Positions 3,202 through 26,603 are shown, numbered from the stretch's first letter. The stretch: DNA of 64,000 nucleotides from Epithemia pelagica (GCA_946965045.2 OX337230.1:2790001-2854000), one strand, 5' to 3'. Translations and numbers: made by a program. The notes: generated by a model from the sequence alone, not told the origin.

Positions 3202-3289
3202 TTTGTAGACCATTCTCCAAACGTCTTTTCTTGCAGATTCTAAATGTGTACTAGACCAAACCAAATACTTTTCCTCACTACCTATGGCT

Positions 3290-7509: not shown

Positions 7510-8129
7510 CTTCCCAATTCTTCATTAAAAAGCAACAAGGTCAGGAAAATAGGCGAATACATTACGTCAATTTCCCTGCCAAAACTGCTAAAATTTTGCC
7601 GGCAGCCGCTCAACATAGCCGGATCTTTGTTTTCGCGTCGAAACCCAAAGAAACGATCTCACAGAGACGCTTAACTTACAATACTGCTAGAATCACTTTA
7701 GTCTCCTGATTCGATCGATTATGATGTTGGGCACCACAAGAAGGACGTCGATCTACTGGATCTGCTCGCTGCGAAGTACGCTTTGCTCTGTGCTGTGGGG
7801 AAAACAATGATCGCGTGCCTGGTGCCTGGATCTGGAATTTGGACTTTTTGCGCGAAAGAAAGTGTCGGTTTTCAGTTTTCGGTTTTCGGGTATCTGTTTG
7901 CCGAACTCGAGTCGTGCTACTGCTACGCTCTACGCTCAGACTCAGAACAAATAATGTACAGGCAACTTTACTTTACCTCAGAAAGTACGGTATGCCTGCC
8001 GTGGAGGTCGATTTGGGAGGGCACCACATACTTGTAGCCCCAAGCAGGGATGAATAGTCGGATCGCACATGTGTCGTGAATTCTAGGTGCATAGTCTTAT
8101 TCAGTTTGCAGACAAGAATCGAATCACTA

Positions 8130-8163
8130 CAAGCTGAGTTCAGACAGAATGTTCCTGACGTAG
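8130..8163 (+). repeat. Left TIR CAAGCTGAGTTCAGACAGAATGTTCCTGACGTAG
   Basis: Matches the reverse complement of 26226-26259 at 31 of 34 positions; preceded by TA. Confidence 0.9.
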
Positions 8164-8734
8164 CGCTCCAGTAGGAAATCTACGTAATCCGCGCGAGCCA
8201 TCCCCTTAATATAGCCCTTCTATTTATGCCTCTACCGTTCTACCAAAAATTGACCATGGTGAACGGTCCTTTTGACCGATCTCTTGCCAAATAGGAGACG
8301 GCTCCATGATCCCATGCTCTGAACCTCTTCTCCATTCATGGGTTGAGCATGGAGAACGATGTCGGCGCTGCATTCGTTTTGCAGGTGTGTTGAAGGTGGT
8401 CGCCGCGCGATTTACTACGGCGACTCACGGCAAAACTTGGTGCAACCAATGCACCTCTATTGTAGAATCGAATGATAGAAGATAGAACAAAGACTATGAA
8501 CACTTGTAGCGTTGTTCACGTCAAAAATTGATATTCTTCTCGTTAGATATATGGAAGTTGCGTCGTTCACAACAAAGATTGATGTTCTTTTCTTTGTTGT
8601 GACTCACACAGCCGTACCTGAACGCAATGTATTGTACGGTAAACGTAACACAACTATAGAATTAGATCGTATTCATAGAGAATGAAGATCCTACTCAAAT
8701 GATAATCATAAAACGCTACTACATTGTTCACTAT

Positions 8735-9307
8735 CTAGGCTTGTTGATGATTAAAGAAGAGATTTTGAAGCGGGTGCTTGAGCATCATCGCACCAAGCGA
8801 AATGTTGAAGCGATCCATATCCTTGCTGCCCATGTAGATTGTAACGACCTGGGGTTCCATGCAGGCTTTAGGGTTGATGGAGCAGCGTGTGTAGAGGCGG
8901 ATGCGTCCCATGGGAGGTCCGTTCTTGCTCGTCTTTCCAGAGACCTGGTCCAGGTGCGACAGAGCAATGAACCCAACTGGAACAACCAACGCTGGTTCCT
9001 CATGCTCGCTTGTTGTATCCCGGTCAAAGACTGCAATCCGTAGGTAGTCGGTTGCAAGCTCCCGCTGCACAAGCAGATGGCCACGGTCGACGATGTTGTG
9101 GCCAGTGTCCTTGTTTCTCGACATGGGCCCGATGAGCGCGCAAACATCGCTGGCATAAAAGCACGACTTGAACGGGAGACCAGCACCACCCTCACGGCCA
9201 TCCTCTTCGTTGAACTCGAACTTCGTCCTCATGTTGGTCATCTTGTTTCTTCTTCCTTGCCTCTTCCTGTCGTCTCTGTTTGATTGTTCCATTGCACGGC
9301 GGGTCAT
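8735..9307 (-). CDS. Hypothetical transposon cargo ORF (up to 190 aa)
   Basis: Open frame inside the TIRs, divergent from the 9479 gene. No recognisable motif. Confidence 0.4.
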   Translation of the reverse strand: MTRRAMEQSNRDDRKRQGRRNKMTNMRTKFEFNEEDGREGGAGLPFKSCFYASDVCALIGPMSRNKDTGHNIVDRGHLLVQRELATDYLRIAVFDRDTTSEHEEPALVVPVGFIALSHLDQVSGKTSKNGPPMGRIRLYTRCSINPKACMEPQVVTIYMGSKDMDRFNISLGAMMLKHPLQNLFFNHQQA

Positions 9308-9478
9308 TCGGAAGTTGCTTCATGCTGCAAGTTGATTTTGTGGCGCGCGCCGATATTGTTCACGAATGAGCGCGGGGGGATTCCCTAGATGACACAAGAA
9401 CGGAGAGCGGGCAACAATCAAACAAACAAACACAACAATCAAACGAACGAATCCCTATTGTGTTCTCACTTTCCAACG

Positions 9479-10385
9479 ATGCGCCAGACGTGTAGTGCTA
9501 CCAAACGAGCTGAGTCTGCGAAGAAGGAGCAGGAGGACTCCGCCGCAGCTCCCTCCACAACCGCATTTCCCTCCGACAAGGGAAACAAGGGAAACAAGGC
9601 AAACAAGAAAATGAAGACAAAGACGGCCGTGGACAACAAAACGTCAAAGAAGAAGAAGACGACGACGACGAAGTCTCCCGCTTCGACAAAGAAGCATGTG
9701 ACCTTCAACCTTGAGGGTCCTTCGTCGTGGCACGAGCGCGCAAAACAGTGGCAACTCACCATTGGGGATGAAGATGGTATCCCAGTGTTCTTCGTCAGCA
9801 ACAAGGACGTCGAATGCGCTAACCTGTCGGATATTGCGGCAGAGCTCCTTGCGATCGAGGCTGTCGGCAAAGAAGGTAAGTTTGATTGTTCATTGTTGGT
9901 TTTGAGTCTCCCTTTCTCACGACGCGCCCTCTGCTGCCACAGACACCAAACCCAACAGCAAGCCCGACAACAAGCCCGACAGCAAGCCCGAGAAGGAGAT
10001 CAAGAAGGAGGACGACGTCGAGAACAAGACTCCAGAGTCTTATGTGACCCCGAAGAAAGTAACTTCTTCCCCGAAGGTGGCGTCTCGAGCTTTCGCACTG
10101 ACCCCCTCCCAGAAGCATGCTTTCCAGCGTCGGATTGCTGAGGAACAGGTGAAGGAAAGTGGAGCGACAGACCCTCGCCAGACTTTGAATGAGTCGCTGG
10201 CATTGGGAGAAAACATCCCGTCGTCTCCTCCTTTGTTCTTTAGCAATCCTTCCCGTGCATACCGGACATCCATTGATTCGTATGCCGATGATGGATTTCT
10301 CGAGACCCAAGAAGACTTCATCGGTACGCAGCAAAACGGGCTTTTTGGTCCCGATTACTTGGATCATGAGGACGAGGCGTACTAG
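9479..10385 (+). CDS. Hypothetical spliced cargo gene (9479-9875, 9943-10385), ~279 aa, Lys-rich N-terminus
   Basis: Donor GTAAGT at 9876 and acceptor CAG at 9942 join ORF 9389 to ORF 10044 in frame (840 nt). KKKKTTTTK is NLS-like. Confidence 0.6.
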
Positions 10386-10893
10386 ATATCTACTGATGGA
10401 CGTTTTAGGTATCCTTAATCACTAAATATGAATCGATTTGTCATCATGGTAGTGCTTCTACAGTCATTCTTGTTGTGATTATCATCATTGTCGTCGTCCA
10501 AGTCCTCGTCATTGTCGTGGCTATCATTGTCGTCGTTGTATTGTAGTCGTCCTTGTTGTAGCTATCATCGCTCATCCTGTTTGTCCTCTTCATCATCATC
10601 GTCATCGTCGTTATCCAGCTTGCCAGTGTCGGTAGTTGGGTCCCGGTTTGCGGGCACGCCTCGTATGGATGTACGAGGGAGTTTGTGATTGGTCCCAGAC
10701 GAGCTATGATTCTTATCTCATATTTTGCGTTTTCGACACAACACGACAATGTACTAAAGTATAATATGAAGGAATAAATTAGTAAATCTTAATGTCATAC
10801 TGCAACTCAACGTACCATGGTATTCTTTTTCAACAATAACACACTTTCACCACAAGGAAAGATCTAAGTTTGATCGGCTTCTTTGTTCGCGAT

Positions 10894-13809
10894 CTAAATA
10901 CCAGGTTTTTTCGTAGCCAGAAGCACTCTACGATAATCACCCTGGACGGCAACGCGATGGCCATCGAGCGTAAGGTTAACCCGAATGATCCCACTTGGGC
11001 GATCACCAGGAATGTCAGGAATGTCCTTTTGATGGAAGTAGCACTCTGAAAGCCTTTGTCCAGAAGGTAGATTGTTGCTGTTCTTTGGCATGGGATCGTG
11101 GATGGTCCCATCTTTTCCTTGGTACACGTAAAAATGTGCACGTGGATTTCCCAGCTCTCCAGTCTTAAAGCCACCAGCATGGACAGTATCTCCTCGAACG
11201 AGGAGAAACTTGCCGTACGGGATTTGTACCACGTTACCCAACTCATGCGTATAGTTCTCGTGCTTCTCAGCACGGTAGCTCCACAATTCAATGGACATAC
11301 CCTCCTCCGTCAGGGGCATAAAAACAATGAAGGGGATGCGTTCCCGGAGTGGCAGATCTGAGAACGATCGCCGAGTCATCCTTTTGCTTTTTTGTTGCTT
11401 CCCGGATGGCGTTTTTGGACTCTCGGACATGTTTCCTGTTACGGCCGGGAACAAGAAGTCGATGTGAGGTTCTTGCACTTCTTCCCGAGTGGTCTTCATA
11501 AGCGAAAGGTGAATGCTCATTTGGTCCGCAAATGATTCATCTTTTGCGTAGTTCATTCCATGGAGAGCTGAGGCAAGAAACTGCTTGAAATCTGTCGTGA
11601 CTTTTTGGACATGTTCTGGGTCGCAGTCGTTGAAGTACCGAGTGTTGGCCACTATGCCCTCATGTTCCATCATCGCCATCAACAAATTTGGGGTGTAGTC
11701 TTGAACAGATTTGAAAAAGGTGCCCTTTCCTTTACTGTTCAGGTGTTTGCCTTTCCACACTTGCTCCAACAACTGGAGGAGGTCTGGCGGCGTTGTAAAA
11801 AAACAGCCTCGATAGATTTTGTTTTCACTATCGTATAGCGATTTGAAATACTTCTTGCGCAATTCTCTATTTTGCAACATCTGTTGCTTTTGCCATTCAC
11901 CCTCCTGCATTAACTCGTCGATCGCATTCATCTCCGGAGCAAAAGAATTGTCATCCGACATCTCCTGATCAAAAGAATTGTCATCCGTGGTGTCACTTTC
12001 TGAAAATTCTGGCAAGGCAATTACTCGTACTAACATTCCAGAAAGGGAGCGATCGGGTCGAGTGGCGGGTTGAGCTTGTGCTGCAGGTGGGACAGGATTG
12101 CTCGGACGCTCCGGTGAACCTACGACCGGCTGGGTCGTGCGTTGTTGTTGCTGCGATAAAGGCAGAGCCCCCTGGTAACCTCCTCCATAATGGGGTTGAT
12201 TATAGGACGGGGGATGCCCATGGTAATGCGGCTGAGGATGATGCGGCGGCGGAGGATGATGCGGCGGAGGATGATACGAAGGAGGATGATGATGATACGA
12301 AGGAGGATGATGATGATGATGCGGCGGAGGATGATACAAAGGAGGATGATGACGATGCGGTGGATCATAATATGGCGGAGGATGATGACGATGCGGTGGA
12401 TCATAATATGGCGGAGGATGAGGATGATGCGGTGGATCATAATCCGGCGGAGGATGAGGATGATACGGCGGAGGATGATGTGGTGGCAGCTGAGGGGGCG
12501 AATTGTAGTGCCCAGAAACGTCTTGCGGAGGAGGCGGAGAAGGAAGAGCAGGAGGACGAGCAACAGCAGCAACTGGGCGGAAAACAGTAGTAGAAGAGGT
12601 AGCGAAAGCCTTCTTTGTTTTTTTCCCGTCGTCTTCATTTTCATCACTGGGTCGACCGTGTTTCTTTCCCTCGTCTTCGTCGTCGTCACCTTTCGTCGAC
12701 GGTCGGATAACCTGTTCGGAGGACGTCGGCGATTCGTCCGAAAGGTTATAAAACAAAGACAGCTCGTCGCCCTTTTCGATCGGCTTGATTGCCTTGACTA
12801 GAAGATTCGGCATGATTCTCACGTTGTATTGATCATCCGATTCATCCGGTGGATTGTCTGTACCGTACCGATGGTGTAGGTGGTCGTTGATTAAGTGCAG
12901 CCCCATGCCGAAGTGATCGTCGTTGTCTGCTTGAAGCCTTCGATTGTCACGTCCGAACTGAATCGCGTACTCGTTGGGTACAACTGTCCGAGACGTGACG
13001 TCGTTTCCCGTGTACGCGCCAATCACTTCACCATCTTTGATTGTCCGAACTGCAAAAACGCCAAACCCGGCGCCTGGGAGTTTTGACTCCTTCACCTCAA
13101 ACAGAAGCACTTTTCCAAGGTAGATCTTGACTACCGGATTGTTCGCAAATGTGTAACCGACATGCTTGCCGATCGGGAAGGTATGTTTTCTGTTCTTCTT
13201 GACAGGGAGACCCATTCCACTTGAAAGTGGCACAATCTTCCCCTTTTGCAAGCCAGAACCGGGCTTCCGAATTGGAGCTTCTTGGACCGAAAAAGTGGCC
13301 GAAATCTTCCGTGAGACATACTCTCCCATAGCACAGGCAAGTACAGCACTGTCTTTGATCTTGGAGAGCGTCTTGAGGCCTTCGGTGAAAGTCCTGATTG
13401 GATCCCGTCCAGAACGAGAAGGGAGTTTCTCCACTTCCTCGACGCCTTTCTTGTAGTCCGCTGTGCGCGTATCGGTGAGGAGCTGCCGCATTTGAGTTTC
13501 CGAATACTGTTTGCTGTGGTCCTTCTCTGGATGGCCACGCCGAACATCTGCAAGCTTTTTATCCTTCACTTCGGCAAAGTCTTGATCCGAAAGAAACCGA
13601 TGGTGCTTTGTTGTTGTCGCTTCGTCTGTTGCTGCTGCTTCGGGTGCTGCGGCTGCTGCTGCTTCGGGCGCCGCTGCTGCTTTGGCTGACTGCTCTTCCG
13701 CTGCATCTATTGCAAGTATAAGAGCGTCAAGATTTCCTTTGTCACTCATGCTGTCTCGTTTTTGAGCGCCTGCTTTTGAATACTGTTTCTTAGGGCTTGG
13801 TTTCCCCAT
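10894..13809 (-). CDS. SET domain + Pro/His-rich linker + 2OG-Fe(II) dioxygenase-like fusion protein (~971 aa), transposon cargo
   Basis: SET motifs ESKLPGAGFGVFA, YTG, HLINDH, IEKGDELSLFYN (~12745-13110). Dioxygenase motifs QEPHIDF (HxD), GDTVHAGG (distal His), GNPRAHFY (Arg) (~11100-11560). Uninterrupted ORF. Confidence 0.8.
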   Translation of the reverse strand: MGKPSPKKQYSKAGAQKRDSMSDKGNLDALILAIDAAEEQSAKAAAAPEAAAAAAPEAAATDEATTTKHHRFLSDQDFAEVKDKKLADVRRGHPEKDHSKQYSETQMRQLLTDTRTADYKKGVEEVEKLPSRSGRDPIRTFTEGLKTLSKIKDSAVLACAMGEYVSRKISATFSVQEAPIRKPGSGLQKGKIVPLSSGMGLPVKKNRKHTFPIGKHVGYTFANNPVVKIYLGKVLLFEVKESKLPGAGFGVFAVRTIKDGEVIGAYTGNDVTSRTVVPNEYAIQFGRDNRRLQADNDDHFGMGLHLINDHLHHRYGTDNPPDESDDQYNVRIMPNLLVKAIKPIEKGDELSLFYNLSDESPTSSEQVIRPSTKGDDDEDEGKKHGRPSDENEDDGKKTKKAFATSSTTVFRPVAAVARPPALPSPPPPQDVSGHYNSPPQLPPHHPPPYHPHPPPDYDPPHHPHPPPYYDPPHRHHPPPYYDPPHRHHPPLYHPPPHHHHHPPSYHHHPPSYHPPPHHPPPPHHPQPHYHGHPPSYNQPHYGGGYQGALPLSQQQQRTTQPVVGSPERPSNPVPPAAQAQPATRPDRSLSGMLVRVIALPEFSESDTTDDNSFDQEMSDDNSFAPEMNAIDELMQEGEWQKQQMLQNRELRKKYFKSLYDSENKIYRGCFFTTPPDLLQLLEQVWKGKHLNSKGKGTFFKSVQDYTPNLLMAMMEHEGIVANTRYFNDCDPEHVQKVTTDFKQFLASALHGMNYAKDESFADQMSIHLSLMKTTREEVQEPHIDFLFPAVTGNMSESPKTPSGKQQKSKRMTRRSFSDLPLRERIPFIVFMPLTEEGMSIELWSYRAEKHENYTHELGNVVQIPYGKFLLVRGDTVHAGGFKTGELGNPRAHFYVYQGKDGTIHDPMPKNSNNLPSGQRLSECYFHQKDIPDIPGDRPSGIIRVNLTLDGHRVAVQGDYRRVLLATKKPGI
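12200..12560 (-). repeat. Coding tandem repeats (36-bp unit = PPPYYDPPHRHH, about 3 copies plus degenerate ones) in the Pro/His-rich linker
   Basis: Unit ggaggatgatgacgatgcggtggatcataatatggc recurs on the + strand from ~12341. Confidence 0.8.
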
Positions 13810-14219
13810 GGTCGAAACGCAAAAACTCGAAACACGAAACACAAGAAACACGAAACGCAGCATTCTCCTCAGCCCTCAGCTCACATTCCAAAAAAAATCT
13901 TGAGCTCACATACTAAAAAACGGTGAAGTTTTGGTATGTGGGCTGAGTTACTTAAGGATTTGCGTGCCAGTTTTGCGATGCGTGTTTGTTTTCGGAGAGG
14001 GAGGCGTGTTTCGCGCGAGGTCTGCTCCGAAAATCGTCCATTTTCTCGCTCTCTCACATTTTCGAGGTACTTACAAACTGATAATCCAACACGCAACACG
14101 AGCACGCAACACGGAAGTGATCATTGATACCAATAACTGACAAGAAATACATTCAATAAAATGGATTGCTGTTATAAATAGTTAAGTTACATGCATTTTG
14201 ATGATAAATGGAGATTAGA

Positions 14220-15692
14220 TCAGGTTTCTACTGCACCAGATCCTTGCGTTTCTCTCCAGAGACGTGAGATGAAGCCATGATCTTGGTCGAAGGCGGATCG
14301 GTGACACTTGATTGCTTTTGACATCTTTTCAATTTCGGCATACGAGAGGCCCGCAGCTGCATAGTCTCTGTTGTTGGAATTTTGATCGTATAACAAGTAC
14401 GCGAGCATATAGCGACGTGCCTTTGCTGACATTTTCCGCATGATTTCGGGTGTTGTTTTCTTCAGGCTCGCTGTCAAACATCGTAAAAAGGCAGCTTTGT
14501 CTTTCTTCTCATTCAGTGAGAAAGCACGAAAGACTTTTTTTGAGTAACCCCAGCCATACTCGATCCCCTCACCGGCCATTTCACAGTGATACTTGGTCGA
14601 TACGAGAATCTCGATCCTGCAACGATGTCGTTCAGACAAGTCTTCCGCCAGCTTCTCCATTGCAGATTTTTCGTTCTTGAAATCAGAGCATTCGCTCATC
14701 AGATGAACCATAGAGTACTTTTTGTAGTCCGCCTGATAGGCTTCTTTCACAGTCTTCTTATCCGCTTCCAGCCATGCATCTCTGGTTGTCTTGACGTACT
14801 TGATCATGTTGTTAGGGTCTATCCACCCCCGCTCCCATAACACTTGAAAGAGCCCTTTTGCAGCATTCATCCAGCCTTCCTCGATCACATCATCTTCAAT
14901 CACCGTTGCAATGTTGGAGCGTTTACAAAGGTCCTGTAGTTCACCAGCATTTTTCGATTGAAATGAACGTTGCATTCCAGGTCCCATGACCCGGACAAGT
15001 TTTGCCATGAGCTCCTTCTTTGTGAGGTTGCGCTTTTTCTTTCTACCAGTTCGGTGTGTATTCTTCGATGCGACACGCTGCGCGTCATTGAGACGATGGC
15101 CTTTTTTAGCAACTGGACCACGATCGTTCTCCTGATAGACGAGGTGTTGTACGTCACCAACTCGTAGTTTGTCGTCATGGTTGTACGGGCCAAGGCAAGC
15201 TTGATCAATAATTTGTGTGTCCCGCATGCTGGGAACAGCTCCTCCCCAGTCGTTATTCATGTTCAGAGCATTTAACCCATCGGATTGTTGTTTTCCATGA
15301 CCACTGCTTTGGTTGAACAAAAAGACAAAGTCATGGGCGGGGAACATGACCACAAGGCAATCGACAATATCCTCCAACTGCAAGGCCATGTATTCATAAT
15401 TCCAATATCCCTCTTTATCTGCTCCGTATTCAAAAAAGCGAGTGAACGGTTGGGCATTGGTAATTGGAGTCTTGGCAGTGTGACCATTGAGGTTCACTGC
15501 AGCCTCGGTAGAGACGTATTTGTTGTGTGTCGTATGTAGACGGAGTTCATTAATCCGAAATAGACTCGCAGCAAGCAACGGGTTTCCGTTCATAAGGAAG
15601 CCCCATGATCGGCTTACAAAAGCGCTGATCATCATCCCATGTCCATCATCCTTTGGCAGCATTTTAGTTGCGCCATCTTTAGTGTACCATGC
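14220..15692 (-). pseudogene. C-terminal half of the IS630/Tc1-like DDE transposase, cut off by the copia insertion
   Basis: PKDDGHGMMISAF, EGYWN, FLFNQSSGH (second catalytic position, here N), KGLFQVLWERGWID, KYHCEMAGEGIEYGWG (catalytic E). Joins the N-half in frame across the CATGC TSD. Confidence 0.85.
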
Positions 15693-16475
15693 TGTTAGAA
15701 TTCTCACCATCTATGGTGGTTAGATTCTACATCTCATCGATTCCCCATGTCACATAGCCTCGTGCTATCGCATCATGCCCTCTAGCTTCGAGCTATGTTT
15801 CCTAGCTTCGCGCTATATCGACCTATATTTCTTCGCAAATCATGAAAAGTGAGAATAGATTGACGAACTCACTCTCAAGACTAAATTGGGTCGTGCGGTA
15901 TTACAACGGACGTAAATTTGGCCGTTGCTCGGACACTGTACTAACGCCCTAAGCGTACGCGCCCGAAATCATCGAGCGTGCCCAAGCGACATCCGAGCGC
16001 TATCGGCATCTATCCGATCCAACGGTCTAAGTATCCCAAGCACGACACACGATCACGCGAGACCATATTTCCATTCCCACAATCTCCAAATTGTCAACAA
16101 GCTGCGCGCCATGAAAACAACTATGCCAACCCAAAGCAAGAGCTGTTGACCCTGTATATGTTATCCGCCCACATATACATGTCATATACATCACATGAAT
16201 CAACTCCAACTATTCCAAACCTGTTGCCGCCAAGAACCTATGATACATGACCCTTGGCAGGACCGAACATTTCACGTAGACCTATCGTAGTAATCAACAC
16301 ACAATCTAACAATATCACCATTTATCACATCCTCTTTTGTGTCCCGACTATCCTTCTGATAGACTTCGACTTGCTTGCTTCTCTGACCCTGAGAAGCTTG
16401 TATCGGTTGGTGACCTACCTGATTGTCTGCTCTACCGAGCATCAATGTCCCTACGATTCAGAAAGAATTGTAACA
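15693..16475 (+). repeat. 5' LTR (783 bp)
   Basis: TGTTAGAATT...AATTGTAACA; no difference from the 3' LTR seen by eye. Confidence 0.97.
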
Positions 16476-16486
16476 GATTAACAGTC
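16476..16486 (+). promoter_or_regulatory. Putative primer-binding site GATTAACAGTC, complementary to a tRNA-Asn(GUU) anticodon arm
   Basis: Abuts the 5' LTR. No TGGTATCA-type PBS is present. The reverse complement GACTGTTAATC matches the tRNA-Asn anticodon stem-loop as I recall it. Confidence 0.5.
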
Positions 16487-16511
16487 TCAAAGCTTATTTC
16501 CTTGTGGTTTC

Positions 16512-17291
16512 ATGGATACTAACGAGATTATCACTCCTGTACGACAGATCTATCGAGCCAACCTGCATCCCGGGCAGCCCGATACCCTGGTGCAGCAGGA
16601 ACTGGTGCCGACGCCGAAGGCAGCCAACACATCGGTCAACATCTCCGTCGACAGTTCCAACAGCAACCCATTCGAGACTCCAACCCAGCCTCACGCTCCG
16701 ATCCCTGCGCCGTTGCTTCGGCCCCCGAGTCCGCCTCGTCGGCTCGTCCCTTCTCGATCCCGTCGTACCACCCGGTTGATTGCTGATCATATCAAGTACT
16801 TCCGCCAACCAACTTGTTCGACCTTCGATCCCGAGATCATCCGTGGGGAGACCCAGATCGAACGCCAGTTCCAATCGGTGACCCACATCGTCGACCAAGA
16901 AGACATTGACCGTCTGAACGACCAACTTCACCGCTCTCCGAGGCGTCGCCTCATCTTTGCCGCCCTCTCGGGCAACCCCATCCGTACTGTCCACCTCCGC
17001 TTCCTAACCTTCGAGCGCCCAACTGGATACTACAATACCATCTACGTCGTGAACGCGACGACTTGCCCTCTGCCTCCTAACGTTGTACGCCTAGATAACT
17101 ACGTTGCCTACATCCACGAGGTCCATACCATCGAGGACCATCGTGCAACTATCTACCCTTTGCGTACCGAGGTCGAGAACCACCTGGCTGAAGGTGATAC
17201 CCCTTCTTCTGTTGCTTGTGCTGCCCCATCTGAGCCTGGAAGCGACTCTGATCATTCGGAAGAGGGTGAGGATTCAGAGACCGAAGCTTAA
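16512..17291 (+). CDS. Extra ORF (259 aa) of the copia element, upstream of gag-pol
   Basis: ATG-initiated sense ORF between the PBS and gag; Pro-rich N-part, acidic tail; no recognised domain. Confidence 0.65.
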   Translation: MDTNEIITPVRQIYRANLHPGQPDTLVQQELVPTPKAANTSVNISVDSSNSNPFETPTQPHAPIPAPLLRPPSPPRRLVPSRSRRTTRLIADHIKYFRQPTCSTFDPEIIRGETQIERQFQSVTHIVDQEDIDRLNDQLHRSPRRRLIFAALSGNPIRTVHLRFLTFERPTGYYNTIYVVNATTCPLPPNVVRLDNYVAYIHEVHTIEDHRATIYPLRTEVENHLAEGDTPSSVACAAPSEPGSDSDHSEEGEDSETEA

Positions 17292-17611
17292 TTACTCATA
17301 GTTAACTCCCGTCCTCTCAAAACCTTTCCAAGACTTAAACTCAACGCACATCCGGGTACCCTTGGTCGCACAACACGCCACACATTCCCGTCAAATCGCG
17401 AAAATTCGGCGAAAATTTGTTGAAACTCGGCGAAAATTTGTCGAAATCAACGGAAATTTCCAGGAGTCGCACATCACAACACACATCCGGGTATTACATA
17501 CGTGGTACATACGTGGCACACGTGGTACATCCGGGTTCACATCACATCACACATTAAATAAACCACATCACACCGCACATTAAATAAACATCGAACCAAC
17601 CAAATAACACC

Positions 17612-20600
17612 ATGGATCCTCAATCACCCAAGACACCTACGACTCCTAAGGGAGAAGATAACCAAGACAATGTCTCGGACACAGACCTATTCGACCACAT
17701 CATATTTACTGTCTGCCAATTTTTTACCAAAGAAAGGGCTGACTACTTAATGAAGTGGATGAAATACCATGGTTTTGAGAACATTACCCATGTTATCTCG
17801 TATATGCAAACTAATACCGAGGAATCCATGAAGGAACTGACACAATACAAGGTCAACAAACAGACACATGATCTACAAGGCCCCACAAGACAGCAGATCA
17901 AGCTCTTGGCTTATTGGGCCACATACAAGACCAATGAAATTCAAGACGAGCTATCCAATAGCGACTGGATGAACCTAACGAGGAAAGAGTTCAACACTTG
18001 GAGGATCAACACAGATTTCTCTAAGGGACCACCTAGCCAAGTCCCAATCTCGCCAATGAAGTCACCGTCATCTGTGAAATCTGTCAGCACAGTTACTGCC
18101 GCATCCCAATCTCAACAAGACCTTACAGCATTCAGAAAGGGAACTAAGCGCGACGCAACTGCATATGAGGTATTCAAGGATGAACGATACTACGATTCAT
18201 TCTGGCGTGTATTCAAGACTACAGCTAAGGCTCAAGGCCTATCCAACGTTCTGAATTTCGAATACACACCACCCCATGATGATGAGTATGCCGAAGAACT
18301 TTTTCAAGAGCAACAAGTATTTCTTTACTCCGTTCTTGTCCGTATCATTCAGACTGACCAAGGTCGAGCCTATGTACGTGAACATGAACATGATGAAGAT
18401 GCGCGTGCCGTATTGCAGAAGTTACACTCTTTGCATACTGAATCCGACCTAGCAAAGCGAGAAGTCCTCCGCTTAACCAACTACATTTCCAATTTACGTC
18501 TTGACGACACATGGCGCGGAACAACACGTCAATTTCTTCTACACTTTCAAGAGCAGCTACGTTTGCTAGACAATTTAGTGACATTGTCTGATCGCATCCC
18601 TGATCATACCAGGATGACCTTCCTCATGCAAGCTGTAGAAAAGGTACCTGATCTCCGCCGAGTCAAGATCTTGGATAATGTGGTGAACACCAAATCCGGT
18701 GCAAAATCCCTTTGCTATCAATCATACTTCCGTCTCCTTCTAGACGCAGCTTATGACCATGATCAAGCAACCCAGTCATCTGTTCATAGTCGCCGTCGAC
18801 ATGTCAAACAACATGAATCACTATATGGCCAAGATACAGATGCTGACATAACCTCACAAGATGATATGGAGTATCATGTCCACAACACCAAAGCGACATC
18901 TGAATCTCCATCCTCTTCGTCCAAGGTTAGTCTACCGCGTGACCTATGGTTCAAACTTTCTGAAGAAGATCGCAAGTTGATCATTGAATATAACAAGATG
19001 ATTCAAGCACCTTCATCAACAACACCGAGGACAGTACAAACACATGCCCTCGACATTGATCCGGAACCTGATCCTGATCCCAACCAAGTTGTATCTGATG
19101 ACGACTCACCTGGCGTAGTCACTGAGCATTCAGATGATTCAGATCCGGTTACACAATTTATCAACCAAGCCATGACGACTGATATCAATCACCCGGCAAC
19201 TGACCTGACTAGTGTTCTTTCTAACGCCAAGTCCAAGACGAGCAAGAAGGTTACTTTCAAAGCCAACATGCATAAACAAGCAGGACATGTTCCACGCTAT
19301 CTGTTTTCCAGGAAATCTACTTTACCAGGGAATCAATTGATTGACCGTGGTGCTAATGGAGGACTTGCTGGTTCTGACATGCGCATCCTTTCTAAGACTG
19401 GCCGCCATATCACTATTGTGGGTATTGATAACCATGAACTTACTGGACTTCCTGTCGTCACATGTGCCGCAAAGTTTGAGACCAATGATGGACCTATTGT
19501 CGGCATCTTCAATGAATATGCTTATTATGGGAAGGGCTTATCTATCCATGCTCCTGGTCAATTCGAGCATTTCGGACTTGCTGTTGATGAACGATCTGTT
19601 AAAGTTGATGGTAAACAACGCATCACTACACTTGATGGTCGTGCCATACCCCTTCACATCAAGGATGGGTTAGCCTACATCCACTCCTTGGGTATCCCCA
19701 GCGACGATGACATGGATACCTTACCTCAGATCATCTTCACGTCACCCGACACATGGGATCCTGGTGTTCTGGACCATTCGTATTCTCCCACACCCTCTGA
19801 CAATGATCCTGATTGGAAACACGTCAAGACTGATGGTAGTATGTCGAACCATCCATATGACAACTATGGGGAGTACACTGATCGTGTTGTTTGTAACCTC
19901 AATCTCCTTTTGGATCTCCCATACGATCATGGACCTGACGACGCACCCTTCTTTTCTATCTATGCTGACGCAGAAGGTAATGATCCTACACTTCATGCCT
20001 CTGTCCACCGTCGTTACCAGGAAGCGTATGACTGGAAGAAGTTCCGTCCATTCTTTGGTTGGCAATCTGAAGATGTTATTGCCGATACGTTCAAGCACAC
20101 TACACGTAATGGTAGCATTACTTTTGACCACGACACCCTCAAGAAACATTTCAAGGCTCGCAATCCGGTCCTTAATATACCTCGACGCCATGAACCCGTT
20201 GCTACTGACTCGGTTTTCTCCGACACCCCTGCTGTTGACCATGGTGGTAAAGTCGCACAAATCTTTGTTGGTCGAGATACTCTGGTTACTGATATCTATG
20301 GGATCAAGTCAACCAAACAGTTTGTCAATACTCTTCAGGACAACATCCGGTTTCGTGGTGCCATGGAGACTCTTATCAGTGATGGTGGTTCATCTCTCAT
20401 CTCTCAAAAGGTTAAAGACATTCTTCGCACTTTGCTTATTGGGGAGTATCGATCCGAACCTTATCATCAACACCAGAATAAGGCTGAAAACCGTTACCAG
20501 ACCGTTAAACGTATGACCAACGCTCTCATGAATGCCACTGGTTGCCCTGCCAACACCTGGCTTCTTTGCCTTGAGTATGTCTGTGACTTATTGAACCATA

Positions 20601-23299
20601 CGTCATCACCCACCCACTCCGGTCGCACTCCTCTTGAGGCTCTCTCCGGACGCCCACCCGACATTACTCATCTCTTGTTCTTTCCTTTCTGGGATGAGGT
20701 TTACTATCGTGTCGACCCCGCTGAACCCAATTCCGGTTCATATCCATCTTCTTCTGATGAGAAACTTGGCCACTGGGTTGGTTTTGCTCACAACGTTGGT
20801 GATTCTTTTACTTGGAAGATTCTCACCCAGGATAACCAGATCATCTACCGTTCTGCCGTTCGCCGTGTTGAATCCACTACACCTAACCTACGTGTGGATC
20901 GACCTTCAGGGGAGGATTCGTCTGACAAGGATGACAATGATAAGCAAGCTGACACTGTCTTCATTCGCAGTGATAGTGAAGATCCATCCAAACCAATGCC
21001 CACGATCGATTTTGACGACATGATAGGACGCACATTCCTATGCGACACAGAAGAAAATGGGGAGCGACACCGTGCACGTGTCATCAAACGAGTCATTGAT
21101 CTTAATGAAGAAGCAACGAAACAGGAAGAACGTGTCAAGTATATCTACCGAAAGACAAATTCTGATGTTGATGAGATGATATCCTATAATCAACTCATGG
21201 AGTATATCGAACGAGATAACCAAGCTCAAACCTCTGGAGATAATCTTTTCAGGTTCAGGGACGTCATTGCCCATCAAGGCCCACTGAACACAACTGATCC
21301 AGATTACAAGGGGAGCAAATATAATTTGCTTGTTGATTGGGAAACTGGGGAGACTACCTATGAACCTTTATCACTCATCGCCAATGATGATCCGATCACT
21401 GTAGCAATTTATGGAAAGAAACATGATTTACTCAACGAACCTGGATGGAAGCATTTGAAACGTTATGTCAAAACAAGCAAACGTCTCATTCGAGCAGCCA
21501 AACAGTCAAGGATTAAACAAGTTCACCATTCCGTCAAGTATAAGTTTGGATTCCAAGTACCACGCAATTATGAGGAAGCTGTCACTCTTGATAAACAACA
21601 TGGCAACACAAAGTGGCAAGATGCAACAGAATTAGAATTGTCACAGATCCAGTCCTACAAGACATTCAAGGATTTTGGGAAAGCCATCTTCATTAAAGGG
21701 AAAGTATCCAATGCACCTGAAGGATATCATAAGATACGTGTACATCTTGTCTTTGACGTAAAACATGATGGACGACATAAAGCAAGACTTGTCGCAGATG
21801 GACATCTCACAAAAGAACCTGTTGAGACAATCTATTCAGGTGTTGTTTCCATTCGCAACCTCCGCATTGCCTTATTCCTGGGTACTTTGAATGACTTGGA
21901 AATATGGGGAGCAGATATTGGAAACGCATATCTGGAAGCCTTGACAGGGGAGAAACTTTTCATTGTCGCAGGACCTGAATTCAAGGAATTAGAAGGTCAC
22001 ATCCTGATTATATACAAGGCACTTTATGGATTGAAGTCATCAGGCGCACGCTGGCATGATGTCTTATTCGATGTTTTGACAGACATGGGATTTTCACCAA
22101 GCAAAGCAGATCCGGATATCTGGATGAGGAAGGCACCTGGAGAAGACTGTTACGAATACGTTGCCGTATACGTTGATGACTTAGCCATTATTTCTACTGA
22201 TCCTGGGAATATCTGCAAGATCCTGAAGGAGAAATACAACTTCAAACTCAAAGGAGATGGACCTATTGATTTCCACTTGGGATGTTGTTACACCAAGGAT
22301 TCTGATGGAACATTAGTAGCAGATCCAAGACGCTACATTGGTAAGATGATGGACACTTTCGAACGAATCTTCAAGGAGAAACCCAAGAAAGCCAAAACAC
22401 CTCTTATTGGTGGAGACCATCCTGAATTGGACGATTCTGAGCTCCTTGATGAAGAAGGTACTAACCATTTCCAAACTCTGATTGGACAACTTCAATGGGT
22501 GATCACTATTGGTCATTTCGACGTCTTCACCGCTACAATGACGCTATCACGCTTTCGTGCTGCTCCGAGGAAAGGACATCTTGATAGAGCCAAGCGTATC
22601 TATGGATACCTTGCACATCTCCCAGAAGGCGCAATCAGATTTAGGATTGGAGAGCCTGATTATTCAAGTCTTCCTACCCAAGAATTTGATTGGACTCGCA
22701 CTGTCTATTCGAATGCAAGTGAACGTATTCCTGAAGACTGCCCAACACCTCTTGGCCGCTATGTTACTACAACTCATTATGTTGATGCCAATCTCATGCA
22801 TGACATAGTCACTGGTAAATCCGTCACTGCTGTTCTACATTTGTTGAACGGAACACCTATTGACTGGTACAGCAAGAGACAGAGCACAGTGGAAACTGCT
22901 ACCTATGGATCCGAGTTCGTGGCTGCAAGGACAGCAATAGATCAGATTACAGAATTACGACATTCTCTCCGCTACCTTGGAGTACCTATCCGAGAGCGAA
23001 GTTACATGTACGGAGATAACAGATCTGTTGTGCTCAATGCAACCGTTCCTCATTCCATACTATCCAAGAGACACCATCTTCTGTCATACCACCGAGTTCG
23101 TGAAGCCATCGCAGCAAAGTATGTTGCATTCTACTGGAAAGATGGAAAGACCAACCCCGCCGATATCCTTAGCAAACATTGGGATTTCGTATCTATCTGG
23201 CCCATGCTCAAGCCATTGTTGTTTTGGAAAGGAGAAGTTCAAGACCTCAACAAATCCAATGATGACAAGGCTGAAACGACGAGTTGTGGGGAGTGTTAG
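17612..23299 (+). CDS. Copia Gag-Pol polyprotein (1895 aa)
   Basis: Protease LIDRGANGG. Integrase core (TDSVFSD..ISDGG..AENRYQ). RT KARLVADGH, ADIGNAYL, ALYGLKSSG, YVDDL. RNase H YVDAN, SEFVAA, YGDNRS, ADILSK. Confidence 0.97.
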   Translation: MDPQSPKTPTTPKGEDNQDNVSDTDLFDHIIFTVCQFFTKERADYLMKWMKYHGFENITHVISYMQTNTEESMKELTQYKVNKQTHDLQGPTRQQIKLLAYWATYKTNEIQDELSNSDWMNLTRKEFNTWRINTDFSKGPPSQVPISPMKSPSSVKSVSTVTAASQSQQDLTAFRKGTKRDATAYEVFKDERYYDSFWRVFKTTAKAQGLSNVLNFEYTPPHDDEYAEELFQEQQVFLYSVLVRIIQTDQGRAYVREHEHDEDARAVLQKLHSLHTESDLAKREVLRLTNYISNLRLDDTWRGTTRQFLLHFQEQLRLLDNLVTLSDRIPDHTRMTFLMQAVEKVPDLRRVKILDNVVNTKSGAKSLCYQSYFRLLLDAAYDHDQATQSSVHSRRRHVKQHESLYGQDTDADITSQDDMEYHVHNTKATSESPSSSSKVSLPRDLWFKLSEEDRKLIIEYNKMIQAPSSTTPRTVQTHALDIDPEPDPDPNQVVSDDDSPGVVTEHSDDSDPVTQFINQAMTTDINHPATDLTSVLSNAKSKTSKKVTFKANMHKQAGHVPRYLFSRKSTLPGNQLIDRGANGGLAGSDMRILSKTGRHITIVGIDNHELTGLPVVTCAAKFETNDGPIVGIFNEYAYYGKGLSIHAPGQFEHFGLAVDERSVKVDGKQRITTLDGRAIPLHIKDGLAYIHSLGIPSDDDMDTLPQIIFTSPDTWDPGVLDHSYSPTPSDNDPDWKHVKTDGSMSNHPYDNYGEYTDRVVCNLNLLLDLPYDHGPDDAPFFSIYADAEGNDPTLHASVHRRYQEAYDWKKFRPFFGWQSEDVIADTFKHTTRNGSITFDHDTLKKHFKARNPVLNIPRRHEPVATDSVFSDTPAVDHGGKVAQIFVGRDTLVTDIYGIKSTKQFVNTLQDNIRFRGAMETLISDGGSSLISQKVKDILRTLLIGEYRSEPYHQHQNKAENRYQTVKRMTNALMNATGCPANTWLLCLEYVCDLLNHTSSPTHSGRTPLEALSGRPPDITHLLFFPFWDEVYYRVDPAEPNSGSYPSSSDEKLGHWVGFAHNVGDSFTWKILTQDNQIIYRSAVRRVESTTPNLRVDRPSGEDSSDKDDNDKQADTVFIRSDSEDPSKPMPTIDFDDMIGRTFLCDTEENGERHRARVIKRVIDLNEEATKQEERVKYIYRKTNSDVDEMISYNQLMEYIERDNQAQTSGDNLFRFRDVIAHQGPLNTTDPDYKGSKYNLLVDWETGETTYEPLSLIANDDPITVAIYGKKHDLLNEPGWKHLKRYVKTSKRLIRAAKQSRIKQVHHSVKYKFGFQVPRNYEEAVTLDKQHGNTKWQDATELELSQIQSYKTFKDFGKAIFIKGKVSNAPEGYHKIRVHLVFDVKHDGRHKARLVADGHLTKEPVETIYSGVVSIRNLRIALFLGTLNDLEIWGADIGNAYLEALTGEKLFIVAGPEFKELEGHILIIYKALYGLKSSGARWHDVLFDVLTDMGFSPSKADPDIWMRKAPGEDCYEYVAVYVDDLAIISTDPGNICKILKEKYNFKLKGDGPIDFHLGCCYTKDSDGTLVADPRRYIGKMMDTFERIFKEKPKKAKTPLIGGDHPELDDSELLDEEGTNHFQTLIGQLQWVITIGHFDVFTATMTLSRFRAAPRKGHLDRAKRIYGYLAHLPEGAIRFRIGEPDYSSLPTQEFDWTRTVYSNASERIPEDCPTPLGRYVTTTHYVDANLMHDIVTGKSVTAVLHLLNGTPIDWYSKRQSTVETATYGSEFVAARTAIDQITELRHSLRYLGVPIRERSYMYGDNRSVVLNATVPHSILSKRHHLLSYHRVREAIAAKYVAFYWKDGKTNPADILSKHWDFVSIWPMLKPLLFWKGEVQDLNKSNDDKAETTSCGEC

Positions 23300-24076
23300 A
23301 ATTCTCACCATCTATGGTGGTTAGATTCTACATCTCATCGATTCCCCATGTCACATAGCCTCGTGCTATCGCATCATGCCCTCTAGCTTCGAGCTATGTT
23401 TCCTAGCTTCGCGCTATATCGACCTATATTTCTTCGCAAATCATGAAAAGTGAGAATAGATTGACGAACTCACTCTCAAGACTAAATTGGGTCGTGCGGT
23501 ATTACAACGGACGTAAATTTGGCCGTTGCTCGGACACTGTACTAACGCCCTAAGCGTACGCGCCCGAAATCATCGAGCGTGCCCAAGCGACATCCGAGCG
23601 CTATCGGCATCTATCCGATCCAACGGTCTAAGTATCCCAAGCACGACACACGATCACGCGAGACCATATTTCCATTCCCACAATCTCCAAATTGTCAACA
23701 AGCTGCGCGCCATGAAAACAACTATGCCAACCCAAAGCAAGAGCTGTTGACCCTGTATATGTTATCCGCCCACATATACATGTCATATACATCACATGAA
23801 TCAACTCCAACTATTCCAAACCTGTTGCCGCCAAGAACCTATGATACATGACCCTTGGCAGGACCGAACATTTCACGTAGACCTATCGTAGTAATCAACA
23901 CACAATCTAACAATATCACCATTTATCACATCCTCTTTTGTGTCCCGACTATCCTTCTGATAGACTTCGACTTGCTTGCTTCTCTGACCCTGAGAAGCTT
24001 GTATCGGTTGGTGACCTACCTGATTGTCTGCTCTACCGAGCATCAATGTCCCTACGATTCAGAAAGAATTGTAACA
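23294..24076 (+). repeat. 3' LTR (783 bp), preceded by a short purine tract (GGGGAG)
   Basis: Duplicate of 15693-16475; followed by the TSD CATGC. Confidence 0.97.
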
Positions 24077-25917
24077 CATGCCTTAGACGAGAAGGAAAAC
24101 TGCTTGTAGATCGATTCGTCCTGGCCGATGAGGATGACAGGTTTGCGGTCGGAGGGAAACCTGTGTGACAAGTTTCCATTGTGAATTGTGTTTTCTGGTT
24201 TGATGTACCGTTCAAATTCGCTTGGGAAGGCATCAACATGGTACTCCCGCATCTGCTTGCCTGTTGTTACATCAGTGTACTCAAATACAAAGCTGTTTGG
24301 CAAGAGCTTCTCCTTGCCCGCATTCCCTTTGTTTTTAAGTTTGATTGCATCCTCGGTAGGGAGCTGCACCCACCGATACGACAGCTCTTCCCACTTAAAG
24401 TACTTCTTGACAAAAGCAGCTCTGTGGGCAACATTCTCAGCATTTTCGTGTCGATCAGTGAAGTATGTTTTCGTGTGTTCCTTGAACACGAACCCTGCAG
24501 CAGCAATACATCGCCACGCTGTGCTTTGCGAAATGGTGGAAAGCTTCATCAATGCCAAGAAGGCCTCGTACGATACTGGCGTTGCATTCGTATCCATGCA
24601 CTCTTGTACGATCATGGTATGCATATCCGGAAGCAATGTTGTCCTCAGGTACATTAGAGCAGACTCTGTTGTAAGAGTGCTCAGGTTTTCCTTTGCCCAG
24701 CATTCAAACTTTACCTTTGCTTCAGGTATGTGAACGAATAAGACGGGCGATGGCTCTTTCCCAATATGAACGTGGTAGTTGGGATGAGGGAAACTGTCGT
24801 TTTCCCGAAAGTACCTGTGAAAACGAGCAATGGTCTTGGGATGTTTTTTTACTTTTTCACCATAAATCTGTTCCATTTTGCTAATGGCTTCGCTTATGCA
24901 GTTCAGCCATGTACGACCGTGTGGCATATCAAGCAACGCTATCTTATAAGAAAGTTGTAAATACGTTGCCTTGAGCAGTACCCTCTGTTGCTGTTCCTGG
25001 TTGAGGGGGAAGATGTCTCCCTTGTTAACCACATTCGGAAGTGCCTCCACGTTGGAAATGGCCCTTTCAAGGGTTTCTATCCATCGCTCAAGATTTCGTT
25101 TTGACGATCCTGGAGAATCGCATTTGCCGGCAAAGAGCCTACGGTTCCTTGGCTCATCAAAATAGGCGCTTTCCATTTGTTGCGATAGACCTTGGATCAT
25201 CTCACTCTCGAAAACTGAAAAACCAATCGGCAAACTCTGTGGATGGTCATGGCCGATTTTGTCTGTGGCCAATTCAGGATGTTGGATTGCTCCAACAAGC
25301 ACCTGATTTGTGTTGTCGTGAGGTGGTGACGTTTGCATTTCGGTAGGGCTGTCTCCAATTTGTGGCGGTTGACCATGTTGCTGCGTTGCAGTGCTCTTGA
25401 TTGCTGGTGGAGTTGAAGTGTTTCTTGCTTGCTTGGATGTATTTAGCGTGCCTTCACGCAACCCTGGTGACTCTTCGTTCCTTCGCTTCGTTGGCTTCGC
25501 TCGTCCCGACCGCCGAATCGTGTTCGTTTCTGCAGCCTCCAGCCATTCTTGGTGATCGTCGAATATCACTGGCCGTGTTGTTGTGTCGGAGCTTACATAA
25601 AAGAATGTGTATCTTTTCTTTTGGATTGTGACTTTGTGGCGGTACCAGCCAAACTTGTTTGGTTCCGACGTCTCAGCTTCGAAACAGAGTTTAAGGACAA
25701 CATCTTTAGACAAAACAAGATGCAGTCTGGTTGTTGACAGTCCTGGCAACCAAGTGCTCATGTATCCTACAATGTTGGTGTCTTAGATCCACTTGTCGCA
25801 GAATCCAAACGAGGTTGGGGAGCATCGCGTCTTGAAGACGTCAAGAACCTCTTTCGTAGATAAACTTCGTTCCATCCGAGACTGTGTTGCGTCGGTTGGG
25901 TCCGATGATCGTGTCAT
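24077..25917 (-). pseudogene. N-terminal half of the IS630/Tc1-like transposase (HTH region and first catalytic Asp); an in-frame TAA at 25783-25785 may interrupt the original N-terminus
   Basis: STAWRCIAAAGFVFKEHTKTYFTDRHE resembles the winged-HTH region of IS630-type enzymes; LIGQDESIYKQ holds the first Asp. The frame stays open upstream to ATG 25917 apart from one TAA. Confidence 0.82.
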
Positions 25918-25928
25918 TGAGGATGATG

Positions 25929-26017
25929 CCAACCGCAAACGATGTTGCCCCGTTGGGGGTGTTTCAAGTAAACCCTAAAGCGTCCGGATGCAGCTCGGCA
26001 ACATCGTTTGCGGTTGG
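25929..26017. repeat. Perfect 21-bp inverted repeat with a 47-nt spacer in the transposase leader
   Basis: ccaaccgcaaacgatgttgcc (25929-25949) and ggcaacatcgtttgcggttgg (25997-26017). Confidence 0.85.
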
Positions 26018-26225
26018 GATGGCCCTTCACCATGGTCGTTAGACAACAACCGTTTTTTCATCATTTTCGACGGAATTCTAGCGTTCGGAAGCTGTCACAC
26101 ATCACGGTACGAATAAAAAATTTATTAATCAGACACTGGGTTGTCACGAGTCGGACACTTTCATTCACTAGTCAGGCCAAACGCTATTGAGGATTATATT
26201 TTATGGTACTAAATCTACGAGGGGT

Positions 26226-26259
26226 CTACGTCAGGAACATACTCCCTGAACTCAGCTTG
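26226..26259 (-). repeat. Right TIR
   Basis: ctacgtcaggaacatactccctgaactcagcttg, followed by TA. Confidence 0.9.
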
Positions 26260-26603
26260 TAATCCTCATGAAGCACCACCGCTGGGGGATACCGCACCAA
26301 AAACCACAACCACAACCGTCCCAAGCCCACCGGACGGCACCAACGATCTACGATAGAGATTCATCGCTAGCTGGAGTCATTGCTTCAAATCCATTTCGGA
26401 GTTGGAGACTTACAGATCACAAATCTTGGGTGCAGAAAAGCGTTTGCGTTAGGTTATAGAGTGGAGTTTTTTCGGTGACTGAGTATAACGGGACATCATG
26501 CAGCAGCAAACTCCGTTGAAATCTTCCAGACCAAATAGTGGACGAATCCCCGTTTCACCAGCGGCAACAGAGGTAAGTTTGAAAAGAGTTATTGTTGTAA
26601 AGG

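Follow-up and report, generated by a model that had tools for sequence, protein, structure and literature searches.

A dead copy of a probable IS630-Tc1-mariner-group transposon carrying a SET-oxygenase fusion gene and two further accessory genes in Epithemia pelagica

The stretch of Epithemia pelagica DNA analysed here, 64,000 nucleotides long (OX337230.1:2790001-2854000 of GCA_946965045.2) and referred to below as the window, contains an element with the ends of a DNA transposon. Its inverted-repeat arms, TA dinucleotides included, lie at 8128-8174 and 26215-26261, and it is interrupted by a copia-type long terminal repeat (LTR) retrotransposon. Once that insertion is removed, the unit bounded by the terminal inverted repeats (TIRs; 8130-26259 in the window) measures 9741 bp. 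It holds a transposase gene split by the insertion, a gene fusing a SET domain to an oxygenase-type domain, and two smaller genes, orf190 and orf250, without known relatives among named protein families (Table 1). We read the region as a dead copy of an autonomous cut-and-paste family that forms a deep branch of the IS630-Tc1-mariner group and that has kept its accessory genes as helpful to the element, and we put the probability of this reading at roughly 0.8.

The ends define the element. Its two TIR arms differ at three positions in the first 34 bp inside the TA (31/34 between arms), the TIR is identical across more than 40 ends, and the terminus CAAGCTG is common to divergent families too. 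At all of the ends first compared (20 left, 21 right) TA is followed by unrelated sequence, and when every distinct terminus is counted, 57 of 57 have a TA flank; the base before it shows a slight bias towards C. The genome was also searched for empty sites, as left flank, one TA and right flank in succession, with the reversed pattern as control. The predicted pattern was found three times, with three mismatches each, as against none for the control, and the homology, which takes in about 26 bp left of the single TA and 31 bp right of it (~58 bp in total), exceeds the search pattern. Since these paralogous empty sites hold one TA with homology on both sides, the TA is a true 2-bp target duplication. 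The target of this insertion is itself a ~58-bp sequence (8103-8129 plus 26260-26291) that three further loci share at ~90% identity (C1:2527429, C2:6098797 and C8:770361; L061, L062 and L063).

Searching the genome (60.5 Mb in 23 contigs) with either end of the element disclosed at least 25 sites at which a left and a right end lie ~9.7 kb apart, as well as short derivatives and copies of greater divergence (73-84% identical). Of the full-length sisters, eight were retrieved. They are 9691-9760 bp long, share a single gene order and are 94-99.8% identical overall, rising to more than 99% outside two mosaic segments, one being the last kilobase and the other the part of the cargo gene that encodes linker and oxygenase. 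(Aligned with L045, the mosaic subfamilies L046, L048 and L050 have these segments at columns ~2000-5000 and in the final kilobase; three versions, at 82%, 92% and 98%, exist of the transposase gene's 5' end and the terminus next to it.) The subfamily mosaics imply recombination between lineages. Compared across its two subfamilies, the fusion gene of the 9.7-kb family is nearly identical in the SET half and only 82% so in the linker and oxygenase half, a contrast that likewise indicates recombination of modules.

Transposase frames of 1119-1129 aa are open in at least 14 copies, five of them scoring identically, and the SET-oxygenase gene is open in at least 14 copies as well. In contigs from this organism's public runs, the element has ~20 times the depth of the unique flank. 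The near-identity of the copies, their open frames and this depth point to very recent activity of the family. Deletion derivatives of 539 bp, which consist of 104 bp from the left end of the element and ~400 bp from its right end, are TA-flanked in six of six cases, and this points to mobilisation of gene-less elements with these ends. Two arrangements of family sequence elsewhere in the genome may be recorded here. At G000:C9:1914232-1931797 four matches to the right end follow one another at a regular spacing of ~5.69 kb, which suggests a tandem array made from part of an element; and at L032 (G000:C16:650651-654213) two copies of the family stand with right ends facing, ~440 bp apart.

The intact transposase is a protein of 1114 aa (L045:6205-9549, minus strand), and in the window removal of the copia element unites the pieces at 14220-15710 and 24052-25761 (minus strand) in a single frame of 1050 aa. 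An exhaustive search for its family yielded 3762 cluster representatives at E ≤ 0.001. Three acidic motifs are invariant or nearly so in the alignments, GQDE (with D612), FLFDxSxGH (with D751) and HxExAGEGIEYxWG, the last of which contains E995 and E1002, one or the other being the candidate catalytic Glu. Residues 560-1114 were modelled with a mean predicted local distance difference test score (pLDDT) of 87.6, and the model was compared with solved structures by an exhaustive structural aligner. The highest Z scores were those of Metnase (12.8), Mos1 (12.5) and Sleeping Beauty (11.5); retroviral integrases reached at most 10, Tn5 8.6, the P element 6.2, Hermes 5.7 and piggyBac 5.0. Foldseek against the PDB returned weak Mos1 rows only (E 0.13). 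In the ESM Atlas the nearest cluster comes from Bacillariophyta, all named neighbours are DDE_3 or IS630, and one Basidiomycota cluster aligns with the transposase over 343 residues. Residues 260-560 are also conserved among the relatives, without a Pfam match, and the ratio of nonsynonymous to synonymous substitution rates (dN/dS) of the transposase is 0.23-0.59. Fold, motifs and TA duplication, not a sequence profile, place the enzyme on a deep branch within the IS630-Tc1-mariner group. Cut-and-paste movement by a DDE (Asp-Asp-Glu) transposase acting on 34-bp TIRs, with TA duplication, can be regarded as shown or strongly supported.

The copy in the window no longer has the means to move itself. 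Its second catalytic motif reads FLFNQSSGH (15297-15323), with Asn in place of D751, a residue that is Asp in eight of eight sister copies examined; its open reading frame (ORF) begins at 25761, codon 57 of the full frame being a stop. Because of the copia insertion, the D751N substitution and the early stop, this copy is dead.

An earlier account of the window, drawn up without any database search (the sequence-only reading), had described an IS630/Tc1-like element of ~9.74 kb with 34-bp TIRs matching at 31 positions and TA outside them, containing a ~1050-1100-aa DDE transposase, a SET gene and two orphan genes. That description agrees with the end comparison, with the measured length, with transposase frames of 1050 aa here and 1114 aa in sisters, with ORFs of 989 (SET), 190 and 250 aa, and with the structural and Atlas neighbours of the transposase core. 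Its view of the element as one of a multi-copy, gene-carrying family is borne out by the 25 or more copies with fixed TIRs and gene order; genomic copies with the same cargo order and TA flanks, for which it had proposed a search, were found, as were paralogous empty sites elsewhere in the genome. The cargo, moreover, is not private to one copy, being kept in families whose transposases are only 38-42% identical, as described next.

Three related families were compared, two from this genome (L059 and L060) and one (L053) from another assembly, which shares with this genome a repeat that is 95% identical and, judging by that repeat, comes from a close relative. Their transposases are 38-42% identical to that of the 9.7-kb family. 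All three encode SET proteins of 316-408 aa without the oxygenase; orf250-like and orf190-like genes (43-48% identical) are there too, and neither order nor orientation differs. TA flanks and CAAGCTGG termini enclose ~7 kb in both L053 and L060. Comparison of these sequences thus shows a cargo-bearing lineage whose layout is fixed at four genes: transposase, SET protein, orf250-like and orf190-like. The oxygenase fusion is, on the same comparison, a later addition within this sub-lineage. More distant relatives of the transposase (29-33% identical) were found in metagenome contigs (L055-L057, which are Logan contigs, and L054 and L058). One of them (~29%) is a 3.8-kb, TA-flanked, transposase-only element whose termini begin CAGCATAC, and others adjoin genes of 338-408 aa without a Pfam match. 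Since more distant relatives are transposase-only elements of 3.8 kb, it is the cargo that defines the sub-lineage.

The SET half of the fusion protein matches Pfam SET (PF00856) at 29.5-29.7 bits, against a cutoff of 22.4, and the same profile is matched in L052 and L053. Its motifs are invariant in six lineages at GxG, at the Asn, and at a Glu followed five residues later by Tyr. The nearest solved sequences are PR/SET domains of the PRDM type, with EZH2 matched weakly. Between the two domains lies the Pro/His-rich linker, part of which (12190-12500) is an imperfect 15-21 bp repeat whose length varies between copies; the lengths of the cargo proteins range from 962 to 989 aa because of this variation.

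The C-terminal domain is harder to name. H201 and D203 (in PHIDF), H296 (in TVHAGG) and R309 are invariant in seven sequences down to 27% identity (alignment A3). Its language-model features in the Atlas agree at 0.93 with clusters of 2-oxoglutarate (2OG) and PhyH oxygenases, and the Atlas model of a homolog, P0175, aligns with 2OG-FeII_Oxy_5/3 clusters at template-modelling (TM) scores of 0.66-0.73. The domain's own model, built from seven sequences, is poor (pLDDT 47); 2OG oxygenases nevertheless make up nearly the whole of its 50 best solved matches, at Z 5.3-7.5. There was no indication of a JmjC domain. Word-indexed protein searches turned up only 2-8 relatives of this domain, and standalone homologs of it (P0175, P0181 and P0179) exist in the diatom Epithemia. 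All this is consistent, at a moderate level of confidence, with an Fe(II)/2-oxoglutarate oxygenase. Between subfamilies the dN/dS of the oxygenase domain is 0.55.

The fusion gene has a second carrier. SET-oxygenase paralogs, 40-46% identical, occur in other repeated units of the genome beside ORFs with a piggyBac profile (PF13843, scored in two paralog units at 34.8 and 33.8 bits, where the cutoff is 22.4). These units total ~11-13.6 kb; one family, of ~13.5 kb, has inverted ends of ~2.1 kb. Duplications of 4 bp were read in three piggyBac-type copies (CTAG, ATAG and CTAT), TTAA not being seen there. Two piggyBac-borne paralogs compared with each other give a dN/dS of 0.31-0.32 in both halves of the fusion. 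Two proposals about these units were dropped: that the paralogs lie next to divergent copies of the mariner-like transposase (their neighbours are the piggyBac-type ORFs), and that an inverted repeat of L052 starting CAAGCTTT is a TIR (it is without TA flanks, and the match is only 72%).

Less can be said of the two smaller genes. Three divergent families have the orf190 protein at 40-49% identity; 55 alignment columns are invariant, and dN/dS is 0.22-0.31. The protein has no Pfam match. (A language-model lead to C2-like domains was weak and was not adopted.) The orf250 protein, also without a Pfam match, shares a motif, invariant at R, A, Q, W, L, D and G, with the ORFs that match it in place and orientation in L060, L053 and L059. 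The 182-aa ORF antisense to orf250, with a dN/dS of ~1 and without a conserved counterpart in the other families, is probably not a gene.

Table 1. Features of the element in the window, and the piggyBac-type carriers of the fusion gene elsewhere in the genome
Feature	Position	Strand	Remarks
Left TA target-site duplication copy	8128..8129	.	TA at 57/57 termini; single TA in paralogous empty sites
Left terminal inverted repeat	8130..8174	+	34-bp core begins CAAGCTGAGTTCAG; likeness to other arm extends to 8174; identical in 20 sister copies
orf190, conserved accessory protein	8735..9307	-	Intact in 9/9 full copies
orf250, basic Lys-rich protein with small conserved domain	9389..10141	+	Sole gene on opposite strand
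182-aa ORF antisense to orf250	9819..10367	-	Overlaps orf250; low-complexity
SET-oxygenase fusion gene	10894..13863	-	989 aa from first ATG; 986 aa in L045
Oxygenase domain (predicted)	~10897-11950	-	PHIDF 11455-11469; TVHAGG 11170-11187; RAHFY 11128-11142
Pro/His-rich linker	~12000-12600	-	Within fusion gene
SET motifs	12745-13074	-	Motif positions in fusion gene
Transposase 3' part, residues ~624-1114	14220..15692	-	Glu motif HCEMAGEGIEYGW at 14550-14588
CATGC 5-bp target duplication of copia	15688..15692 and 24077..24081	.	Read in sequence
Nested copia-type LTR retrotransposon	15693..24076	+	Foreign to transposon; LTRs 15693-16475 and 23294-24076; ORFs 16512-17291 and 17612-23299
Transposase 5' part	24082..25953	-	First catalytic Asp motif GQDES at 24112-24126
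Right terminal inverted repeat	26215..26259	-	Identical in 21 sister ends
Right TA target-site duplication copy	26260..26261	.	TA at 57/57 termini; single TA in empty sites
piggyBac-type carriers	L051, G000:C1:2260000-2269999; L052, G000:C2:1491500-1501499; L070-L076		PF13843 ORFs and inverted ends

The nested copia element has LTRs of 783 bp that start with TG and end with CA; it matches RVT_2 in Pfam at 8.8e-25 and rve weakly. Its LTRs being 100% identical, it is a very young insertion. A separate ORF of 259 aa (16512-17291) precedes its gag-pol ORF of 1895 aa, and a near-identical LTR (98%) adjoins another copy of the transposon, at the right flank of L031.

What would a transposon do with such a set of genes? 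The accessory genes may be retained because they benefit the element. The SET-oxygenase would then alter marks, methyl-lysine or other, that chromatin or nuclear proteins bear at or near the element; the changed marks would oppose silencing or favour transposition, and the orf190 and orf250 proteins would act as partners or targeting factors. That the fusion protein changes such marks at the element so as to counter silencing is the likeliest reading of its function, but one that we hold tentatively, as something short of an even bet. A bolder version would have a deep, undescribed clade with an obligate four-gene programme, in which SET (with or without the oxygenase), orf190 and orf250 together rewrite chromatin marks and the module has been swapped between mariner-like and piggyBac-like transposons; of this we are rather doubtful.

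The accessory proteins could instead belong to the machinery of transposition, serving target choice, chromatin tethering or assembly of the transpososome and not the evasion of silencing. There is precedent for the general idea in Harbinger, which needs a Myb-like second protein for movement. The order of the SET, orf250-like and orf190-like genes is fixed in every cargo-bearing family seen, down to 38% identity of the transposase; orf190 is more constrained than the fusion gene; and the orf250 product has the basic, Lys-rich composition common among proteins that bind DNA or chromatin. The distant 3.8-kb, transposase-only relatives with their TA flanks argue that this class of enzyme can do without partners, however, and from the 539-bp derivatives it follows only that the factors are able to act in trans. 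On balance we think a machinery role unlikely as the explanation, if deserving of more attention than those that follow.

If the oxygenase had nucleic acid as its substrate, as TET/JBP and AlkB enzymes do, and for instance oxidised 5-methylcytosine on the element, it would be a diatom analogue of fungal cargo, TET/JBP genes being carried in fungi by DNA transposons of many superfamilies (PMC12730594). NgTET1 is indeed the single best solved match to the oxygenase model (Z 7.5), and AlkB-family proteins and TET2 are in the list. With a model of pLDDT 47, however, that first place is effectively a tie with prolyl hydroxylases, AlkB-type and small-molecule oxygenases, the top rows lying within one Z unit of one another; the Atlas matches are of the 2OG-FeII_Oxy_5/3, PhyH and P4H types, and the Tet_JBP family of Pfam was not matched even at E 10. 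Action on nucleic acid accordingly ranks as quite improbable.

Captured host genes that merely hitch-hike, with no benefit to the element, would fit the standalone oxygenase homologs in Epithemia. They would also fit the moderate dN/dS of the fusion gene within the 9.7-kb family, 0.55-0.67 in its diverged part (the near-identical part being uninformative), a value that tells to some extent against selective retention. Yet the gene set persists across families at 38-42% transposase identity, the frames are open in most copies, dN/dS falls to 0.31-0.32 between old paralogs, and the fusion occurs independently in another transposon superfamily as well, so that passive carriage seems very improbable.

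Other results, too, count against the interpretation that we favour, an autonomous IS630-Tc1-mariner-group family with useful cargo, and should be set beside it. The transposase, searched whole, in 25 relatives and in pieces, found no match in Pfam at E values up to 10, leaving unmatched the profiles of the DDE_3, DDE_1, Transposase_1 and HTH_Tnp_Tc3 types; sequence searches of the PDB, among them one with a profile of the 25 relatives, also gave no match to it. Some 243 residues separate its second Asp from the Glu, with a folded insertion at model residues ~195-425 (~230 aa), and this is far beyond the 34-82 known for the group. The NH motif of the SET domain reads ND in the six lineages, with Asp for the canonical His, so that methyltransferase activity is to be taken as predicted only. 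The oxygenase domain, which has the poor model already referred to, found no Pfam or PDB sequence match, profile searches included. Among the assembled contigs available from public runs of this organism, none bridged an empty allele. Contigs of two of these runs do differ from the assembly immediately to the left of the element (10 bp inserted after 8000, and G7989A); in one of the two runs a 10.6-kb contig departs from the assembly at 8103 with 19 letters found nowhere in the window. These differences between 7989 and 8103 could represent another haplotype or a local difference of assembly, and the departure at 8103 has no bearing on an empty allele.

A separate superfamily that has converged on TA targets and a mariner-like core would account for the missing profile matches to DDE_3, DDE_1 and Transposase_1, for a protein of ~1100 aa and for the very long insertion in its core, but it too is very improbable: mariner/Tc1 structures outrank all other RNase H-type enzymes, the named Atlas neighbours are without exception DDE_3 or IS630, the Basidiomycota cluster among them, and the order of motifs (DE; D with H five residues on; E, then IE..W..K) parallels that of Tc1/mariner by our own reading.

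The genomes of diatoms are rich in transposons, yet their DNA transposons are poorly described. With its clear ends and target site and its apparently fresh activity, this transposase lineage is a candidate tool for insertional mutagenesis in diatoms, and its accessory set offers a concrete case of transposons carrying enzymes predicted to be able to edit host chromatin or nuclear proteins. It extends a pattern of cargo known from the SET-carrying elements of oomycetes and the TET/JBP-carrying elements of fungi. Should the element indeed rewrite marks, diatoms would have their own counterpart to the TET/JBP story of fungi, with protein methylation as the target.

How new is it? A search of the literature, Repbase and Dfam lying outside it, found neither the SET-oxygenase fusion nor the four-gene layout described, nor this lineage of transposases. 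The sequence-only reading called the element the best candidate for a new system in the window, saw in it a family that brings its own chromatin-modifying machinery, and cited fungal transposons with TET/JBP dioxygenases. To call it a new system is too strong: SET cargo is on record for Harbinger and MuDR elements of oomycetes (PMC12730594), and with SET cargo in stramenopiles and oxygenase cargo in fungi both already published, this is not a new kind of system. As to chromatin-modifying machinery, a SET profile and an oxygenase-type domain are there, a chromatin role being suggested by the domain types only; and as to the fungal dioxygenases, the domain here, probably an oxygenase of the 2OG type, could be TET/JBP-like or of another kind, NgTET1 being tied with prolyl hydroxylases and AlkB-type enzymes at Z 6-7.5.

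Set against the IS630-Tc1-mariner group itself (Tc1/mariner, pogo, Zator and Sailor DD82E, with DDE_3 as the domain), the element has the same TA duplication, short TIRs and a DDE enzyme on an RNase H core. It differs in the size of the transposase (~1114 aa against ~340), in the spacing of Asp and Glu noted above, and in amounting to 9.7 kb with four genes. Multi-gene elements of the Tc1/mariner type do exist in ciliates (TBE1, Tec and Sardine/Thon); they insert at TA and have several extra ORFs, encoding a tyrosine recombinase and zinc-finger or kinase-like proteins. None of them is known to have a SET or oxygenase gene.

The nearest precedents for the cargo lie in other superfamilies. In Phytophthora, HarbingerS and MuDR elements carry a gene for a SET histone methyltransferase (Kojima and Jurka, Repbase Reports 2014, cited in PMC12730594). 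As far as that description goes, they share with the present family the condition of being stramenopile DNA transposons with a SET gene beside the transposase, and differ in having PIF/Harbinger and Mutator transposases; compared thus by description only, PMC12730594 mentions for them no oxygenase fusion and no partners like orf190 or orf250. In fungi, KDZ, Plavaka, hAT, Harbinger, EnSpm, Helitron and other elements carry TET/JBP genes that have been read as a tool against silencing (PMC12730594). There, as with the mariner-like and piggyBac-like carriers here, one 2OG-oxygenase cargo is found across unrelated superfamilies; here, in contrast, the oxygenase is without a TET/JBP assignment and is fused to SET, and the host is a probable diatom. 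Finally, SETMAR (Metnase) joins a SET domain and a mariner-type transposase in primates (PMC9062482). That is a domesticated fusion of the host, one protein, whereas SET and transposase here are separate genes of a mobile element; it is nevertheless the transposase domain of Metnase that gives the best structural match to the transposase core of this family.

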